NCBI GenBank assembly: GCA_013416795.1
Contig: RQSC01000554.1
Coordinates: forward strand, 1 to 64,000
Source: Prasinococcaceae sp. CCMP 1430
Taxonomy: Eukaryota > Plantae > Prasinodermophyta
Length of the DNA stretch: 64,000 nt
Reading direction: 5' to 3'
A program made the position numbers and the translations under genes. This document shows positions 520 to 27,153 of this stretch, piece after piece; positions within the stretch are counted from its first letter, which is position 1, and every line of letters starts with the position of its first letter. The notes under the pieces are model-generated. The model was not told the DNA's origin and did no database searches. It saw only the letters and a program-made list of their open reading frames with translations.

Positions 520-1446
520 GGGGGGCCGCGGGTGGAGGCCACGATCCCGCGAGATCTGAGCAATATCTTCACGATGCCCGTCACGCTCGCGCTGTACGGG
601 ACGCCGGGCGATATGTCGTGGGTTGTGGAAAATCTACGGCTGGCTGGCCATGTGTTGCGGAGGGGGGGCGCGGCACTGCCCGGCGGGCCGAGCGGGAGCG
701 GCGCATATGATAGCACCGAGGGCGGCGGCGGGCGCGGCGCCTTGGGCGTCTCGTACGAGTTCAACCCTGCCCGTGCTCAAAGGGAACTGGATGAACTCTT
801 CGACAAGCTGGCTTCTGAGCAGGAGGGCGCATCCACCGACAGTTTCGTCGAGCCCCCGCAACTCACGTCATCCCTTCGAGAGCACCAGAAAAGAGGCGTT
901 GCTTGGATGCTCTCACGCGAGCGGCAGGCCCCGAGCGTCCTGCCGACATTCTTTGAAGAGCGACTAGAGTTGGGCAGGCAGGTTTTTTACAACTCTGTCA
1001 CCAGTACCTCGACCACAGCGCGGCCATCGCCGGTATTTGGAGGTCTCCTCGCAGACGACATGGGCAACGGCAAGACCTTACAAACGCTTGCAGTCATTCT
1101 GTCCAACCCGCCCACAGGTGTGGTCTACGAGTGCCCCTCGGCCACTCTGAGCGAAGCCGCTCAGACTCCTGGTCACGCTGCTGCTATCGCAGACGCGAAG
1201 GGCAGCGAAGAAGATGCCCCTGTGCCCACTGCCACGACTTCGTCGGAGCTGGCTCTTTCGAATTTTGCGCCCGCATTTGCCAGCACATGGCGCGAGATGT
1301 TCTCAGTAGTACGCGAGGTTTGTGGACGAGTGGCATCCGACTCGTGCGACCTTCAGACTGCACTCACGCTGGCGCAACTTCGCACGCTCTGTCAGGTGTC
1401 GGCTGTGTCAAAGTCTGGCAACAAGGACGCTCTGGCCGCGCGCGCG
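520..1446 (+). CDS. Fragment of an HLTF/RAD5-like SNF2 helicase (HIRAN C-terminal end, motif I, SAP domain), truncated at the N join
   Basis: VEATIP..SNIFTMPVTLALYG (HIRAN tail), SLREHQKRGVAWMLSRE, GGLLADDMGNGKTLQTLAVIL (SNF2 motif I), LTLAQLRTLC...KSGNKDALAAR (SAP). The frame ends at the single N at 1447. Confidence 0.8.
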
Positions 1447-1447
1447 N

Positions 1448-1696
1448 GCCGCCGTTTGTCACGATCGTTACCCCTGGCCGCCGCCGAGGCTCGAAGCGAC
1501 CGATGGTTTCCGCCGCGGCGAAGAGTTCGCCGATGTCGTCGATCCTCAGGATGCCCGCGCGGCGCAGAAGCGCGTCCACCACCCGGTCACCGCTCGAAAG
1601 CGCGCCTGTATGGGTAGCGGCGGCCTTAGCGGCCTGAGGATGGCGGCCCGCCTTGATCGCCACGATGGGTTTGAGCCGGGCCGCAGCGCGCGCCGC
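1448..1696 (-). other. Bacterial-type splinter: acyl-CoA synthetase (NDP-forming)/Pat acetyltransferase flavodoxin-like domain
   Basis: Minus-strand translation AARAAARLKPIVAIKAGRHPQAAKAAATHTGALSSGDRVVDALLRRAGILRIDDIGELFAAAETIGRFEPRRRPGVTIVTNGG; no introns; bounded by an N and by the start of the duplicated block. Confidence 0.8.
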
Positions 1697-2132
1697 GGCT
1701 CCGGAGCCGCCCTTCGCAGCTCGGCGGATGGAGCGGCCGCGACCCGCCGCCATTGAGCTGGACGAGGCCGAGGCGCGCGCTGCGCTCATCGGCATAAGCT
1801 CGCAGGACGGCACGCCGCTTGGCGGGGTCGGCACGGGCGCAAAGCAGCAGTGGTCGGAGCCGGTGATGTTCAAGAGGACCGCGGCGATGGCGGTGCCGGA
1901 GCGACCTGTCGAGAGCGCCGTGATGGCCGAGGCGCGCGCCGTGCTCATGGGCATCAGCTCGCAGAACAGCTCGCCGACCGATGGCGGCGCCCAGTGGGGC
2001 CCGCAGGCCGAGGAGAGCGAGGCGAAGCAGCCGGGGACGCCGGGACTGCCCACGCCATCCAGGGAGGACCGCGACAGGGTGCGCGAGGAGTTGCTCGCCG
2101 TGAACCGGCGTGCCGAGGGCGAGGTCCGCTGA
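1673..2132 (+). CDS. Hypothetical protein C-terminal part, duplicate copy
   Basis: Same frame as 5575-6034 with two EARA(A/V)L(I/M)GISSQ motifs. Confidence 0.4.
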
Positions 2133-2748
2133 CGGCGTGCGCGGCAGAGGGGCGAGAGGGCAGCGGCGCGCTCGCGGCGCGCATGCGCTCGCGCACAGCG
2201 CGCGCAACGGACATGGAGGCCAGGCACGCGCGAGCGAGCGCAGCGAGGGCTTGCGTGCCGATGAGCACGGCGAGTCCTCGCGCGCGGCGTCCCGCCACGC
2301 GCGGACCTCGATCGATGGTAGCGAGAGCTGCACGACGTGGCATTGTACGCATATATATTGACGCCACGGCTGCGAGCTTGATACCTCAAGGCTTAGTGTG
2401 AACACTTATTTTGTATATATTTCACTCGGCGGACGCGTCCAGGGCGCGACGCCAGCCGGGCAGGCGCGCCGCGGCTCATGCGCAAGTGATGGCGGCTGCC
2501 TGCATGGCGTGGCCCGCGAGGGCATCGCGCGCGCTGCAAGCCGCGCTCACACGCCATCCCCGCAATCCCCGCAATCCCCCCCCCTCCCTCCCCTGAGCAG
2601 GGGCTGGTGCGCATGCCGCGTGGTCCCAGCGCCGCCGGCGGTATGGCGGGAGGGAACGACGATTCCGAAACGGCGTCCGAAACGTCCGCGCGCCATACGC
2701 GCGACGCGCGCGCCCCAGCGCGGGCGCGATGGCCGCGGGCGCGAGGGC
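1673..2748 (+). repeat. Copy 1 of a 1,076-bp direct duplication (copy 2 at 5575-6650)
   Basis: Identical ORFs offset by exactly 3,902 nt (e.g. 1850..2401 and 5752..6303). The copies diverge after ...gcgcgagggc at 2748/6650. Confidence 0.95.
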
Positions 2749-3220
2749 ACGAACGCCGCCCACGCGTCCGCGCCGCACGCCGCCTTGTCGCCCAGACCGA
2801 CCACGGCGGCGTGGCGCTTGGCGCCCAGACGCACGCTCGCCGATGCGCCCACCGCGCCCTGGTGTGCGCGCGTGCGTGTGCGTGCGTGTGCGTGCGTGCG
2901 TGCGTGCGTCAGCACGCGCGGTGTGCGTGCGTGCGTGCGCGCGCGCGCGGGAGCGCGCGCGAGCGCGATCACGCGGGCGTGTACTCGCGCACCTTGTACT
3001 CGTCCGCCTCGACCAGCTCCTTGAGCGCATCGGCAGCGGGCGCGGCTGCGTCCGGGAGTTCGAGGTCGTCGTACACGGCCGCGATGAGCAGCTCGGGTGT
3101 GCCGGCGTCCGCCGCGGCGGAGACGTCGACCTCGGTCGCGCGCGCGGTGCCCACGGGGCCCGCGGGCGACGCGACCGTGGCGCCCGACGCCGACGCGGGC
3201 GNTCAGCCAACGTGCAGCAC
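2749..3220 (-). CDS. Internal fragment of a leucyl aminopeptidase (M17) N-terminal domain; intron 2859-2992
   Basis: The spliced frame LLIAAVYDDLE...LKELVEADEYK|GAVGASASVRLGAKRHAAVVGLG resembles the plant LAP segment DFTGKPGQSTVLRLPGLGSKRIALIGLG. Phase-0 GTGCGC...CAG intron. Truncated at both ends. Confidence 0.55.
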
Positions 3221-3222
3221 GT

Positions 3223-4471
3223 CATGCCCAGCGTGACGTTCGTCGACGTGGCTGGGCCGGACGGCCAGTCGCTCGGCAGTGGCTACGTGCCCGAGGATCA
3301 AAAATATACTATAACGTACCAGTACAAGAACGTCCAGGCGCTCATCAACCTCTTCGTTGGTCGCCTCGGACTCGTTGGCGCGTTCGACAACGCCGGCAAG
3401 GCAATCGCCGATGCAGCCCGGACGCTGATATCACTGCTGACGAAGCCACTGGGGATACAGGCCGACACCTTCGACAGCCTCGACACGTACGCCGGGCTCT
3501 ACAGCAGGGCGGTGGGCCCGCCGAAGGCACTTGAGGGCGGGTACTGGAACAACGACACGTATTTCGGCACGCAGCGTCTGTCCGGAGTCAACCCCGTGAT
3601 GCTCAAGCGCGTCAAGTCCCTGCAATCTTCCGAGATCGACAGCAACAAGCTACGAGCGGCGTCCGCGGCGCCGGGTTGCGACGGTGCCTCGCTGAAGGCA
3701 CTCGCTGCCAAGGGCGATCTGTACGTCGTCGACTACGCCAAGATCCTCCAGGCTGACACGCCCGTGCCACACAGCTACTGCACGCTCTCCGACGCCGATA
3801 TCTACCGCACTAGGAGGCACCTGCCAACCCCTTTCGTTCTCCTCGAGCACGGCACCGACGACGAGGTGTTCAGCGTGCTGAGGCCGCTGGCTATCGTCAT
3901 CGAGGGCGAGGCCTTCTGGCCGACGATGGGTCGAGGCGAAGAGCCGCACCCTGCGTGGCAGGTGGCAAAGCAGTACGTCCAGGCGGCCGACGGTACCGTC
4001 CACGAGGGACGCAGCCACCTCGGACGCACCCACTTGGTAATCGAGCCCATCGCCGCAGCCTTCGCGCGCAACATGCCGCCGGCGCACCCGCTCTTCCAGC
4101 TCATGGCCGTCCACACTCAGATGATGGTTAGCAAGAACAGGGATGCGGTGTACGCTCTCGCACAGCCCGGGGGCTTCGTCAATGAACTCCTTGGCCCGCC
4201 CGTCATGACCGAGACATACGCCGCAGTGGACGAGTCTGTCGCTACATGGTCCATCAACCAGGTGCGGACGCCGCGCTGCGTCGTTGCTGAGGAACCACCA
4301 CCCTACACTGTGATCTCATTTGTGCACGCGTCACGCATTGCATCAGCACTGACACTCAGCACCACGGTCGGTGCGCGCGCGCGTGCAGTACGCACTGTAC
4401 AATGAGCTGTCCAATCGTGGCTTCGACTGCAAGCACGAGTCTACCGCAGACGCGCACGCCGCGGCCACAGG
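3223..4471 (+). CDS. LOX: Lipoxygenase fragment (exons 3223-4261 and ~4389-4471); N- and C-termini absent
   Basis: YFGTQRLSGVNPVMLKRV, LYVVDY, WQVAKQYVQAAD, and an exact H-x4-H-x4-H-x17-H-x8-H cluster (HEGRSHLGRTH...PAHPLFQLMAVH). GTGCGG donor at 4262; the next exon YALYNELSNRGF resembles the LOX 'DL..RG' region. Confidence 0.9.
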
Positions 4472-17338: not shown

Positions 17339-19117
17339 TCAGCCGATGCGCACGAGCATCTTGTTCTTCTTGCCCGCGGCCAGCAGCACCAGCTTGCCCT
17401 CGATGACGTCCTCGTCGGCGATGAGCGCGCCCTCGTCGCCCACCTTGACGTTGTTGACCCGCACGCCGCCCGACTTGATCATGCGCCGCGCGGCGCTCTT
17501 GGAGGGCTGCATGCCCGCGGCGACCATCACGTCGAAGACCGGCGCGCCCGCCACGCGCTCCAGCGGCAGCGTGGCGGTGGGCATGTCCTCGGCGATGGCC
17601 TCGAGCGTCGCCACGTCCAGCACCGTGTCCGAGCCCGGCTTGAGCGCCTCGGTGGCCGCCAGCGCCGCGCGCAGGCCCTCCTCGCCGTGCACGAAGCGCG
17701 TGACCTCCTCGGCGAGCCGCCGCTGGGCGTCGTTGGGCCGGTAGGCGGCCTCGCCCATGCTGGCGGCGATGGCGTCCACCTCCTCCAGCGGCAGGAAGGT
17801 GAGCATGCGCAGGAACTTGACGACGTCCGCGTCGGCCGTCTTGAAGATCGCCTGGTAGAACTTGAAGGGGGACAGCTTCTCGGGCGACAGCCAGATGGCG
17901 CCGTCCACCGACTTGCCGAACTTGGTGCCGTCGGCCTTGAGGAGCAGGGGGAAGGTCAGCCCGAAGGCGGGCGGGCTGGTGGTGGTGGTGGTGGTGGTGG
18001 TGGTGGTCTCCTGCTCCTGCTCCTGCTGCTGCGAGGAGGAGGAGGGCGAGGACGAGGACACCTCCTCCTGCTCCCCTGCCGCCTCCGGGGCGTCCGAGGA
18101 GGCGCCCGAGCTCGTCGCCGTCTTGCGGATGAGGTCGGTGCCAGCGGTGATGTTGCCCCACTGGTCGGAGCCGCCGATCTGCACGCGCACGCCGTGCTCG
18201 CGGTGGAGGTGCGCGAAGTCCCACCCCTGGAGCAGCTGGTAGGAGAACTCGGTGAAGCTCATGCCGTCCTCGGAGGACAGGCGCGACTTGACGCTGTCCT
18301 TGTTCATCATGACCGACACGCGCGCGAAGCGCCCGATGTCGCGCAGGAACTCCAGGGCGCTCATGTCGCGGTACCAGCTCATGTTGTCGAGGATGGCGAT
18401 GGAGCCGGCGGTGGCATCGGCGGTGGTGGCGTCGGCGCTCGAGTCGTCCGCGCCCTCTGCCTCCTCCCCGCCCTCCTCCCCCGCGACGACGTCGACCTCC
18501 GCGCGCAGCAGCTTGCCCAGCTGCGCGCCGATGGCGCGCAGGTTGCGCTCCAGGACCTCGTCGTCCATCATGGGCCGCTCGGCGGACTTGCCGCTCGGGT
18601 CGCCGATGCGCGCGGTCGCGCCGCCCACGAGCGCGACCGCGCCGTGGCCGCAGCGGCGGAACCACTCGAGCACCACGATGCCCAGCAGGTTGCCCAGGTG
18701 GAGGGAGTCGGCCGTCGGGTCGAAGCCGCAGTACACGCGGAGGGAGTGATTGTTAGCTGCGGAGCGCAGCGCGTCCTCGGCGGTGACGGCGTCGATCAGG
18801 CCGCGGGAGCGCAGGACGTCGATGATGTTGTTGCTGTTTGAGGAGGGGGTGGTGTTAGGTGGTTGCTGCTGCTGCTGCTGCGAATGCTGCGAATGCTGCT
18901 GCTGCGAAGACGGGGCGCCCTCGGCGGCGGCGGTGGTGGTGGTGGTGGCGGCGTCGCGAGCGGACGAGCGCACGGGGGAGCACACGGGGGAGCACAGGCG
19001 GTGCGCCTTGCGGCTGCGGCGCGGCGCAGCAACAACGGGGCGGGACGCGCCGCGCCGGCGCCGGCCGCGCGACGCGAACGCCGAGAAGCGGCGGCCCGCT
19101 TTTGCGGCGAGCAGCAT
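17339..19117 (-). CDS. tyrS: Organellar (bacterial-type) tyrosyl-tRNA synthetase with transit peptide
   Basis: YCGFDPTADSLHLGNL (HIGH), FSYQLLQGWDF, QIGGSDQWGNI, KFGKS (KMSKS), C-terminal S4-like domain; Arg/Ala/Ser-rich N-terminus. Confidence 0.97.
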   Translation of the reverse strand: MLLAAKAGRRFSAFASRGRRRRGASRPVVAAPRRSRKAHRLCSPVCSPVRSSARDAATTTTTAAAEGAPSSQQQHSQHSQQQQQQPPNTTPSSNSNNIIDVLRSRGLIDAVTAEDALRSAANNHSLRVYCGFDPTADSLHLGNLLGIVVLEWFRRCGHGAVALVGGATARIGDPSGKSAERPMMDDEVLERNLRAIGAQLGKLLRAEVDVVAGEEGGEEAEGADDSSADATTADATAGSIAILDNMSWYRDMSALEFLRDIGRFARVSVMMNKDSVKSRLSSEDGMSFTEFSYQLLQGWDFAHLHREHGVRVQIGGSDQWGNITAGTDLIRKTATSSGASSDAPEAAGEQEEVSSSSPSSSSQQQEQEQETTTTTTTTTTSPPAFGLTFPLLLKADGTKFGKSVDGAIWLSPEKLSPFKFYQAIFKTADADVVKFLRMLTFLPLEEVDAIAASMGEAAYRPNDAQRRLAEEVTRFVHGEEGLRAALAATEALKPGSDTVLDVATLEAIAEDMPTATLPLERVAGAPVFDVMVAAGMQPSKSAARRMIKSGGVRVNNVKVGDEGALIADEDVIEGKLVLLAAGKKNKMLVRIG

Positions 19118-19451: not shown

Positions 19452-19945
19452 CGGACGCACCAGGGTCGACGGATTAGGGGAATAGGGTTGATGGAGGAAG
19501 CGGGGTCGTTGGATTAGGGAATCAGGGTCGAGGGAGGAACCAGGGTCGTGGGATTAGGGCACCAGGGTCGGCGGACGCACCAGGGTCGTGGGATTAGGGC
19601 ACCAGGGTCGACGGACGCACCAGGGTCGTGGGATTAGGGCACCAGGGTCGACGGACGCACCAGGGTCGACGGATTAGGGCACCAGGTCGACGGATTAGGG
19701 TGTGCTGGGTTTTAATTTTTTCCGCACCAGGGTCGGCGGATTAGGGCACCAGGGTCGGCGGACGCACCAGGGTCGTGGGATTAGGGCACCAGGGTCGGCG
19801 GATTAGGGTGTGCTGGGTTTTAATTTTTTCCGCACCAGGGTCGACGGACGCACCAGGGTCGTGGGATTAGGGCACCAGGGTCGGCGGACGCACCAGGGTC
19901 GTGGGATTAGGGCACCAGGTCGACGGATTAGGGTGTGCTGGGTTT
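19452..19945 (+). repeat. Higher-order minisatellite built from GCACCAGGGTCG-based 18-nt and 22-nt units containing GGATTAGGG
   Basis: Alternating gcaccagggtcg(a/g)cggac and gcaccagggtcg(t/a/g)(g/c)ggattagg units; three blocks each end in gtgtgctgggttt(taattttttcc). Confidence 0.9.
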
Positions 19946-20517
19946 CTAATGGCATATTCAGCCTCGGTTCATATGGGTTATCGGGTCAGAGGAGGGTCCG
20001 CACACGAGCGCATTTCGATGCGGCGGCGGTTCCCCGAGGGGTACGGGGAGCGGATTAGGGCATCGACGCGCGGGCGGCGCGCGCGCTGCGCGCGCCACTC
20101 TTGCTGCTTTGCGCGCCGCCGCGCGCAAAGCAACCCCCGCGGCGTGCGCGCCGCGAGAGTCACCCAGCGGCCTGTTGGGTGTCTCGGCAGCGGCGAGCGG
20201 GCGCCACGGCGCGCGGGGGCGCGGGTGCGATTGCGAGAGATCTGGCGCGCTCTGAATCGGAGGTGCTCACGAGGGACGACGATATTGATGGGGGGGGAAA
20301 CGTTGGCTGGCGAGAATGATGCTGCGCGAGGCGTGCGTGCAGGTCGGTTTCGTTTCGGCGGTTCGCCGGCGCACAAGCGCCGCGGCGCGGCGGATTGGTA
20401 TAATTGAAGGTGTTGGGAAAAAAGTGAAAAAAAGTAAAAAAAAAATGTTTATGAGAGGTTTGGTGTGGTGTGGTTTTGATGGTTGTTAATAGATGAATGT
20501 AAATGTGCAAAAAAAGC

Positions 20518-20630
20518 TGACATCTGCAGGATTCGAACCTGCGCTCTTTCGAACAAGAACCTTAATAGAACATTCGCGACGCACCTGCGCGGCGAAGCTT
20601 GCGCCTTAGACCAAACTCGGCCAAGATGTC
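20518..20630 (-). tRNA. trnL-AAG: tRNA-Leu(AAG) with a 31-nt intron at non-canonical position 30/31
   Basis: Acceptor stem GACATCT/AGATGTC-A; D arm GCCGAGTTTGGTCTAAGGC; anticodon arm CAAG[intron]A-TTAAGGT-TCTTG; variable arm TTCGAAAGAGC; T arm GCAGG-TTCGAAT-CCTGC; T7 Pol III terminator 2 nt downstream. Confidence 0.88.
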
Positions 20631-20702
20631 CAGGATGGTTGGCAAGTCGAAATTACTGCTTAAGTTTCAATGTCCACAGAACCGCCTCATCCTCTCCCCT
20701 GT

Positions 20703-20817
20703 CACACGCGCCGGCGGTGCTCCGCGCGGGGGGATGCGAAGGGACACAGGTCGCAGCGACACACGCGCCGGCGGTGCTCCGCGGGGGGGGGATGCGAAGA
20801 GGCACAGGTCGCAGCGA
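20703..20817 (+). repeat. Tandem duplication of ~57 bp upstream of the tRNA
   Basis: cacacgcgccggcggtgctccgcg...gatgcgaag..acacaggtcgcagcga occurs twice. Confidence 0.85.
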
Positions 20818-21009
20818 TCGCTTTCGCGAGGGCGGCGGGGTGCGACGAACACCCGCGGACTCGTCAATTTTCGTTCGTGTTTTTTTTAATATGCATTCCA
20901 TACTACAGTACTGTCATTTCGCGGTGGGTCAAGCGTGGCGGGTGGAGTGGTGGTGGCAGGTGGAGTGGTGGACTGCGAGACTTGTGTTGATGGTTAGCGC
21001 TCTGACGAG

Positions 21010-21948
21010 GCACCTGGTTCGGGGGAAGCCAATGACAATGCCATCAATGCGGCTGCCGAACGCTGGTTCGCCCTCGTGCCCGGCATCACCGACGCCCAGA
21101 AAAGAAAGGCTTTGAAGCCCAATAGGAAGAAGAAGGACACCCTCCGCGGCCGCCTTTGCGACACACAAGCCGTCCAGAGCGAGCAGCAAGACAAACTTCA
21201 GGAGCTATGGAAGCTCCTCGAGTGTACAGAAAACGACGATGCTCTCTTCAAATTGAAGGTGGCAGGACTCTCGTCATCGGTGACACGCAAGTGTCTTGCC
21301 TCAAAGTTCAATGCATCACAACTTGTTGAACTGGCGAACCTTCTCTTCAACGCCGCTGCCGATGGCCATGAGCCGAGCACCCCCCATCAGCGCCTCTCTT
21401 GTTTCACGCATTGCGGGAGCTTCGTGGCCGTCCTCGACCCGAAACCGAAGAAGGGACGGAAGGGACAAAGGGAGTCGTTCGAGGAGGCGAAGGTGCGCGT
21501 CTCCAGGAGCGCGAAGGCGGCAGCGATCTTGTTTGCGCCAGGCCAGGCAGCCATGTACACATGGCGTAGGATGAGCTGCCTTGGGCGCTCGGGGTTTTGT
21601 GCGCGTTTGCACGAGCCCGGGAGCGAGGAGCGTGCCACCGAGATCGTTGCAAGGGCGAAGGCCCTGCTGCGCGCAGCAGGCTATGAAGACGCCGACACGG
21701 AAGGAACGGCGCACAGCATGACACTCGAAGGCCTCTTCACCACCCTCCGCCATGAAGATGGCCTTCCTGCAGACTTTGTAGCAGTCGCGCAGCAGTTGTG
21801 GGCAGAGCCTCGGCCTGCATCATGGGCCGATGATGAGAAGATGGACTGCTTCCAGAACGGGAAATTCCGCGGGAAATTCGAACGCCTCCTTCGAGAGCGT
21901 CTCGCTGCACGACCGCCGGCGGACGCCGCAGCCGGCCCCCCGGAGTAA
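21010..21948 (+). CDS. Hypothetical protein (~300 aa), possibly preceded by an intron
   Basis: Long open frame with balanced composition and lower GC; ctgac...ag acceptor near 21009; no family recognised. Confidence 0.45.
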   Translation, partial: APGSGEANDNAINAAAERWFALVPGITDAQKRKALKPNRKKKDTLRGRLCDTQAVQSEQQDKLQELWKLLECTENDDALFKLKVAGLSSSVTRKCLASKFNASQLVELANLLFNAAADGHEPSTPHQRLSCFTHCGSFVAVLDPKPKKGRKGQRESFEEAKVRVSRSAKAAAILFAPGQAAMYTWRRMSCLGRSGFCARLHEPGSEERATEIVARAKALLRAAGYEDADTEGTAHSMTLEGLFTTLRHEDGLPADFVAVAQQLWAEPRPASWADDEKMDCFQNGKFRGKFERLLRERLAARPPADAAAGPPE

Positions 21949-26150: not shown

Positions 26151-27153
26151 CCCGCGCCCTGCTGCGCGCGCGCAACATGTGGCACGCCCGGGGTGGCAGC
26201 GCGCCAGAGCACCCGCCCCAACGCGCGCCCAGCGCCAAAAAACAAACAAAAAAAAAAGCCAACCATAACAAAAACAAGCCACGCGCGCTCGTCTAGTGGC
26301 CGGGCGCCACACAGGACGAGCTGCCGCGGCGACGGCGCCCTCCCCGCGCGGGCGGCAGCGCGCGGCGCGCGCGCGAGCACACGCCGGGCGCCGCCGCCGC
26401 GCAAAAAACGCGACCTCAAAAAAAAAAAAAAAGGTTGGGTTCGTATGAACAAGTGCGCTATGCATTTTTAAACGGCGTATCAAATTGCACGGCGTGAGGG
26501 AGGCTTTTTTAAAAAAGAATTGTGTCGATCTGAGAGCACCAAAAACCGTACAAAATGTTCATCAAAGAGACGGTGCGCTGCCCGCGTTGCCTGGTGGGGT
26601 TCCGCCCAAGCCACATCAAAACCAAACGCGACGGAGCCGTTGCAATGCGGATTCCTTTGGTATCATGCGGAAGCCAACGGGCACGCGCGCGCAACACAAA
26701 AAAAAATCAAAAAAAAAACTTGTGGCCCTGGTCGCGCGCCGCACGAGCGCCTCCGACGTCCGTTTTTTCAAACCTCCTTCGGTTGGATCATTTTTTTTTT
26801 TTTTTAAAGTCCTACCTGGTACCGTACCAGGTACTGTAGTCTAGTATTTACTTGTACGTACAAGTACGTGACTTTTTTTGTTGTTGGGAAAGCACGTGCA
26901 TACTGTATGTTTGGGTATTTATGCTCGAAAATGAGAGGAAATGTTTTTTTTGTGGACTTTGGATAAGATGGGGGGGGGGGAGGTGGAGGCGTTCGAGAGG
27001 TTCTGCTAGGCTGACCTTCCCCCCACCACCTCACCTCCCCCCCTCCCCCCCTCCCCCCCCCCCCACCACACACACACACTTTGCGTCCCCGCCTCCTCCT
27101 TCTCCCGGGAGAGAGCCTGTCCTCGCGGTCCTCCGCGCCACAGCGCGCGGCCN

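Follow-up and report, generated by a model that had tools for sequence, protein, structure and literature searches.

In the textbook account of eukaryotic tRNA splicing, the intron sits at position 37/38 and the enzyme measures from the tRNA body. The bulge-helix-bulge (BHB) motif is defined by 3-nt bulges, a central helix H of 4 bp, and a helix h or h' of more than two pairs (PMC3728597, PMC4090602). Archaea have introns at position 30/31, and it is also where the tRNA-Lys(CUU) of Nanoarchaeum is split (PMC4090602). The nuclear tRNA genes of Cyanidioschyzon merolae carry ectopic and multiple BHB introns, which were validated by RT-PCR and northern blot (PMC3728597, Soma et al. 2013) and are located in the D stem, D loop, variable arm, T stem, and T loop; the motifs that are readily (first) spliced in this alga have stabilities of about -11 kcal/mol (PMC3728597). 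Introns in the D loop (20/21) and T loop (58/59) of nuclear tRNAs from Chondrus crispus have likewise been validated by RT-PCR (PlantRNA 2.0, bioRxiv 10.1101/2021.12.21.473619). According to the passages of PMC4090602 that cite Kawach et al. 2005, tRNA genes of the Guillardia theta nucleomorph contain ectopic inserts of 3–24 nt, most of them with no definable BHB, and permuted tRNA genes occur in Ostreococcus and Micromonas according to the passages of PMC3978253 that cite Maruyama et al. 2010. Among eukaryotic nuclear genomes, ectopic BHB introns have been documented for red algae; the reviews examined describe them as almost absent from green algae, and the statement in a first-pass annotation of the DNA analyzed here, that such introns are known from some prasinophytes, was not borne out by these reviews. 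Prasinoderma is absent from a 2026 review of tRNA genes in photosynthetic eukaryotes (PMC13578239), the Prasinoderma genome paper does not describe nuclear tRNA genes (PMC7455551), and our full-text literature search found no paper on Prasinoderma tRNA introns.

Here we describe a tRNA-Leu(AAG) gene with a 31-nt intron at position 30/31, located in a 64-kb stretch of DNA that was analyzed as a whole (the window). The G+C content of the window is 68%; that of the published Prasinoderma coloniale genome is 69.8% (PMC7455551). The ORF to the left of the tRNA (17339–19117, minus strand), which encodes an organellar-type tyrosyl-tRNA synthetase (TyrRS), is identical to the EukProt entry PRCOL_00003633 except over the intron annotated there, and we take the stretch to be part of the genome of this marine green alga.

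The gene resembles those of C. merolae in that it would be a nuclear gene of the Pol III type with a short insert outside 37/38, and in the predicted fold of its intron junctions, which is strict or relaxed (hBH, HBh') in C. merolae and HBh' here, with a computed stability comparable to the approximately -11 kcal/mol of C. merolae. It differs in that the intron lies in the anticodon stem, which is not among the positions listed for C. merolae, and in that splicing has been demonstrated in the red alga and is predicted here, in a member of the Prasinodermophyta (green plants). Position 30/31 and a relaxed signal of the HBh' type are shared with the introns and split tRNAs of archaea (Crenarchaeota), where recognition of the HBh' signal is independent of position, a property that we would ascribe to the P. 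coloniale gene as well. The archaeal enzyme, in contrast, is an alpha2beta2 or epsilon2 EndA, whereas here it would be the eukaryotic Sen complex, and the tRNA is of the eukaryotic type, with an AAG anticodon, no encoded CCA, A and B boxes, and a T-run terminator. Chondrus likewise has ectopic introns in algal nuclear tRNA genes that standard scans miss or call pseudogenes, but it is a red alga with two fixed loop positions and RT-PCR validation, whereas the intron described here is in a stem, in the green lineage, and predicted. Ostreococcus and Micromonas are green-lineage picoalgae with pre-tRNAs that need BHB-guided processing outside the normal context, as would be the case here; their genes are circularly permuted, whereas this one has an ectopic intron. 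The Guillardia genes differ in residing in a nucleomorph rather than a nuclear genome. In the literature examined, an ectopic BHB-type intron in this lineage and at this stem position is undocumented for eukaryotic nuclear genes.

The gene is on the minus strand (Table 1); the first-pass annotation gave its letters correctly in the gene sense and left the strand unstated. The identification as tRNA-Leu(AAG) is confirmed by the Rfam match and by the deletion analysis that follows. Model RF00005 matches the window at 41.7 bits (gathering score, 29) over model positions 1–71; the strands of the anticodon stem are separated by 40 nt instead of the 9 nt of the model. We enumerated all deletions within the anticodon arm and asked which of them leave 5 bp in the stem, 7 nt including U33 in the loop, and a variable arm of class II. 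Exactly one does so, with the cut at G30/A31, and it produces the stem CAAGA/UCUUG and the loop UUAAGGU with anticodon AAG, in agreement with the earlier placement of a 31-nt intron at 30/31. The deleted bases are positions 34–64 of a 113-nt precursor, and their removal leaves the intact 82-nt tRNA-Leu that had been proposed, in which 22/22 exon pairs are standard and CCA is not encoded. The same enumeration excludes a canonical 37/38 intron, which would need a C31xU39 mismatch and would put a CGC anticodon on a class II body. The variable region is of class II, with 11 nt forming a 2-bp stem capped by a GAAA loop, the discriminator is A73, and the restored anticodon loop contains U33, the Leu anticodon AAG, and G37. 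The long variable arm, A73, U33, the Leu anticodon, and G37 are what we take to be the identity elements for LeuRS. That such a gene is easily missed by standard scans is true of ARAGORN, which calls no tRNA in the whole 64-kb window, and untrue of Infernal with Rfam, which finds it at the score given above. Neither Rfam at E<=10 nor a T-arm pattern scan revealed a second tRNA or a second copy of the intron anywhere in the window.

Table 1. Features of the tRNA-Leu(AAG) locus (window coordinates)
Feature	Coordinates	Strand	Basis or remark
Intron-containing tRNA-Leu(AAG) gene	20518..20630	minus	Rfam RF00005, 41.7 bits, full model
5' exon, tRNA positions 1–30 (acceptor 5' strand, D arm, G26, C27–G30)	20598..20630	minus	
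3' exon, tRNA positions 31–73 (A31, loop UUAAGGU, 39–43, variable arm with GAAA loop, T arm, acceptor 3' strand, A73)	20518..20566	minus	
Intron, 31 nt, between G30 and A31	20567..20597	minus	Sole arm-restoring deletion; independent DNA
Central helix H, 5' strand (G26, C27, A28), predicted	20600..20602	minus	Pairs with 20570–20572
Central helix H, 3' strand (intron U26, G27, U28), predicted	20570..20572	minus	Pairs with 20600–20602
Inner helix h', predicted	20573..20596	minus	Pair probabilities 0.89–1.0, dG -11.9 kcal/mol
A-box-like internal promoter element, tRNA positions 8–19	20611..20623	minus	From sequence
B box GGTTCGAATCC in T arm	20529..20539	minus	Perfect B box
Pol III terminator, predicted (T7 run, two bases past A73)	20509..20515	minus	Sequence
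A+T-rich box at -18 to -40	20648..20670	minus	Identical in relative (alignment)

The sequence also contains the signals expected of a Pol III gene. The A-box-like element was assigned by its likeness to the consensus of Pol III promoters, and the B box is the sole T-arm motif that the pattern scan found within the 64-kb window. Where the predicted terminator lies, the sequence of a wild relative (see below) reads TTTCTTTT, and more T runs are present downstream in both sequences. The A+T-rich box stands out against the 68% G+C of its surroundings and may be an upstream Pol III element. Between this box and the gene, 7 of the 17 bases from -1 to -17 (20631–20647) differ from the relative, and over -1 to -27 the divergence is 26%, compared with 4% in the remaining flanks (Fisher p 2e-4). 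In eukaryotes, CUC and CUU codons are read by tRNA-Leu(IAG), the product of the AAG gene, and in the two neighboring ORFs CUC accounts for 30 of the 79 Leu codons and CUU for 8. Active tRNA genes exhibit a transcription-associated mutation signature (PMC6130373), which the upstream divergence seen here appears to resemble; from this likeness we infer an actively transcribed tRNA gene.

A homolog of the right neighbor ORF (21076–21948, plus strand), P0121, is encoded on marine metagenome contigs with 76% protein identity, and two of these contigs, L046 and L047, also contain a tRNA gene (670–779, minus strand; Rfam 43.2 bits), with 39 nt in the arm where 9 are expected. The two contigs are identical across the tRNA gene, and the comparison is thus between two distinct gene sequences, that of the window and that of L046/L047. 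The relative's tRNA gene is the ortholog of the one in the window. Applied to this gene, the enumeration likewise leaves a single possibility: the intron is 30 nt long and lies at 30/31, its splice geometry is unchanged, and the motif has a dG of -12.9 kcal/mol. The exons differ by 7 substitutions and by the length of the D loop (GUUUGG vs GCGG). Six of the 7 substitutions form three double changes that keep a pair, U5:A68 to C:G, C50:G64 to A:U, and A51:U63 to G:C, in the acceptor and T stems; no pair is broken, and all 31 modeled pairs are standard in both orthologs. When the pairing partners were slid by 1–3 columns as a control, no double changes were seen, and of 500,000 simulated sets of 6 or 7 random exon substitutions not one contained three double changes, while all stems stayed paired in just 1.6–3% of the sets. 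Both species have kept all stems, U33, G37, A73, the B box, and the terminator intact. The exons diverge by 8.8% and the flanks by 4%; since the exons change at least as fast as the flanks, the structural pattern reflects selection rather than a short divergence time. The three compensatory pairs therefore indicate that the gene is under selection and that its body has been kept foldable since the split. The 30–31 extra bases inside the anticodon stem would prevent decoding, and the insert must therefore be removed. The earlier reading is thus supported at its core, namely that the intron at 30/31 is real and bears a relaxed BHB/BHL signal, by the relative's 30-nt insert and the three compensatory pairs.

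The three differences between the orthologous introns are confined to the apical part of h' (AGGU to AGU loop, G:U to G:C, and CxC to CxU). The orthologs share the bulges, H, and the first 5 bp of h' unchanged, and there is therefore no covariation bearing on the splice motif. We rejected conservation of the intron as evidence for selection, as the flanks (92–99% identical) are equally or more conserved; the 650-bp block at 20345–20998 aligns at 92%, and the adjoining coding DNA is 85% identical.

Because the cloverleaf fixes the cut sites, the bulge-helix-bulge model is completely fixed as well. The 5' bulge consists of A29-G30|C (3 nt), with the cut after the second base, and the 3' cut is C-U|A31. 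The inner helix h' begins at intron base 2 with 5 bp (UUCGC/GCGAA), continues through a 1x1 mismatch into 4 bp and an AGGU loop, and is present in both the MFE and centroid folds. The central helix H has three of its four pairs (A28:U, C27:G, and G26:U), the fourth being a C25xU mismatch, and the sole possibility for an outer helix is two G:U pairs with D-stem bases, which raise the motif energy from -12.1 to -7.8 kcal/mol. The strict hBHBh' motif has a 4-bp central helix and a 3' bulge closed by an outer helix of at least two pairs, neither of which is seen here. In the relaxed HBh' (BHL) form, the 5' cut lies in a 3-nt bulge between H and an h' of at least two pairs, which is the arrangement in both the window and the relative. 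As modeled, the splice signal is a relaxed HBh' (BHL) motif with an imperfect central helix and not a strict hBHBh' motif. The computed stability of -12.1 kcal/mol (-12.9 in the relative) matches the range seen for C. merolae motifs that are spliced readily. Almost all of it comes from h', which has a dG of -11.9 kcal/mol by itself, and H contributes just -0.2 kcal/mol and has a probability of ~3% in the computed ensemble. A competing extension of the hairpin (A29:U, G30:U, and C:G, with a 1-nt bulge) is 1.1 kcal/mol better, has a probability of 0.6–0.8, and places the 5' cut within a helix. We also kept the splice sites fixed and inserted shuffled introns or random 31-mers from the window. 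An H of at least 3/4 pairs with an h' of at least 4 was reached in 0.4% of these random trials, and a stricter geometry, with the closing pair present and an h' of at least 5, in 0.1%. Such a register is therefore unlikely to have arisen by chance. All of the pairings listed in the first-pass annotation (A28:U, C27:G, G26:U, UUCGC/GCGAA, and the bulges A29-G30-C and C-U-A31) do exist, and its claim of a relaxed BHB/BHL motif stands as far as the HBh'-like arrangement and its improbable register are concerned; it is weakened by the missing fourth pair of H, the low probability of H in the ensemble, and the want of a stable outer helix.

These data bear on whether the insert belongs to the genome at all and whether the gene is alive. 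An assembly or sequencing artefact, in which the 31 bases would be absent from the real genome, has a negligible probability. A 2736-nt contig from the independent DNA run X1 spans 20252–21400 with neither differences nor gaps. The 31 nt are present there unchanged and are therefore not an assembly error. In addition, 91–96% of the words sampled from the surrounding 5 kb are present in 16 DNA data sets from 12 studies, and the metagenome contigs of the relative carry the 30-nt version, which together with the X1 contig refutes the artefact. Short insertions in eukaryotic tRNA genes usually mark pseudogenes (PMC4090602), and the 31-bp insertion could already have been present in a pseudogene of the common ancestor, with another intact gene supplying tRNA-Leu(AAG). 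In line with this, two culture RNA sets and one metatranscriptome (X17, X18, and X19) gave no contig on the gene over 19800–21400, whether spliced or unspliced, in data that are ill-suited to tRNA: they consist of contigs, the libraries were probably poly(A) or size-selected, and the filter applied removes conserved sequences, so these sets say nothing either way on splicing. The RNA contigs of X17 start at 21021, on the neighboring ORF. A pseudogene would be expected to collect substitutions regardless of pairing, whereas 6 of the 7 found here fall in pair-keeping double changes, and three such changes since the split have a probability of <2e-6 by chance. The same elements of the tRNA body, from the stems to the terminator, have moreover stayed intact in both species. 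Repair of the stems by gene conversion from an intact paralog is conceivable, but each such event would have had to leave the insert in place. We therefore consider a pseudogene quite improbable, and a working gene from which the insert is removed, by whatever mode of recognition, very probable on the basis of these sequence comparisons.

How the insert would be recognized is a separate matter. One alternative keeps a working gene and removal of the insert but dispenses with the proposed bulge-helix-bulge; the cue would be, for instance, the hairpin by itself or in its extended form, or else features of the tRNA body, and the activity an endonuclease or another enzyme. The marginal energy and low occupancy of H are as this alternative would have it, as are the competing fold that buries the 5' cut in a helix, the absent outer helix, and the lack of any covariation in H between the two orthologs. 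There is also precedent, since many ectopic introns of the Guillardia nucleomorph with no definable BHB are spliced, according to passages of PMC4090602 and PMC3728597. On the other hand, the cloverleaf sets the cut sites independently of the motif, and just 0.1–0.4% of random inserts then bring bulge, H, and h' into this register; relaxed HBh' motifs also serve as splicing substrates in archaea and C. merolae (PMC4090602, PMC3728597). On balance, removal by some other cue appears unlikely, and a working gene whose intron is removed via the relaxed HBh' signal is the reading that we regard as likely.

With the relaxed HBh' signal as the cue, the gene would be a nuclear one that makes the cytosolic tRNA-Leu(AAG) of P. 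coloniale. RNA polymerase III would transcribe it from the internal A and B boxes, perhaps aided by the A+T-rich box at -18 to -40, and transcription would end at the T run two bases past A73. In the precursor, the 31-nt intron would separate G30 from A31 in the 5' strand of the anticodon stem and form the strong hairpin h'. Pairing of G26-C27-A28 with the intron bases U-G-U would then present A29-G30|C in a 3-nt bulge, with the 3' cut C-U|A31 at a symmetric distance. We infer that the tRNA splicing endonuclease would cut both sites by this local signal, without measuring from the tRNA body, after which tRNA ligase would join the halves and the anticodon stem could form. Finally, A34 would presumably be deaminated to inosine, giving a tRNA that reads CUC and CUU.

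The surroundings of the gene contain several further features. To the left, the TyrRS ORF is a single open frame of 592 codons that reads straight through the intron annotated in PRCOL_00003633 (ORF residues 18–94), so that intron is in frame and free of stops. Between this ORF and the tRNA, at 19854–20015, the summed contig depth in run X1 is 1400–1900, compared with 101 in the flanks, with several variant contigs; this segment is a multi-copy repeat. Just upstream of the tRNA, a non-coding block (20818–20998) is identical at 179/180 positions to contigs L046, L047, and L048, and the ORF that adjoins it is 85% identical in DNA and 76% in protein to that of the relative. Rfam gave no match for the block at E<=1, and from its sequence it may be a conserved RNA of a new type or a regulatory element. 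A G+C-rich unit of 57 nt is tandemly duplicated at 20703–20817; the unit occurs twice in the window and in L047 but a single time in L046, and the copy number thus varies among the relatives. In L047, ~2.8 kb (1150–3994) separate the conserved block from the P0121 gene, where the window has 11 bases (20999–21009), and the long ORFs in this segment have no Pfam match; the difference reflects either an insertion in the relative or a deletion in the window. Farther away, a long G+C-rich hairpin at 26960–27060 gives ~20 sub-threshold matches to unrelated miRNA precursor models on both strands and is probably a mere palindrome.

Searches for further relatives of the tRNA gene gave the following. 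The exact pattern of the 3' exon has no match in JGI metagenome contigs, genome contigs, or viral contigs, and a pattern of the D arm plus CAAG returned 34 loci in JGI metagenome contigs, all of which were rejected as belonging to unrelated low-GC organisms. Contigs syntenic over the TyrRS gene (L035–L045) contain no tRNA, their flank on the tRNA side being too short (75–650 nt), and the contigs of the more distant homologs P0122 and P0123 (L055–L060) have none either. A protein search with the ORF antisense across the tRNA found no match. In three JGI metagenome contigs of 29–38% G+C (L008, L020, and L031), which come from an unrelated organism, the T loop of a Leu tRNA gene is interrupted, with GGTTCAAAT and ATCCCAGCC separated by ~40 nt. 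The interruption looks like a non-canonical, perhaps archaeal, T-loop intron.

The P. coloniale gene has consequences for how tRNA genes are found and how they are processed. Because ARAGORN misses a gene that would decode the common Leu codons CUC and CUU, the tRNA sets of such genomes will look incomplete. If the gene with its anticodon-stem intron works, the algal enzyme must recognize a local RNA signal in the manner of the archaeal ones. Prasinodermophyta is the green-plant phylum that branches before the split between chlorophytes and streptophytes. Whether its members run a position-independent, archaeal-style, BHB-guided tRNA splicing and keep ectopic introns, in the anticodon stem too, across open-ocean species is a proposal for and against which we see the case as evenly balanced. 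If it is true, BHB-guided systems would not be a red-algal oddity and would be either ancestral to Archaeplastida or have arisen more than once. The conservation of such an intron in two members of the deepest green-plant phylum would thus bear on the ancestry of this kind of splicing.
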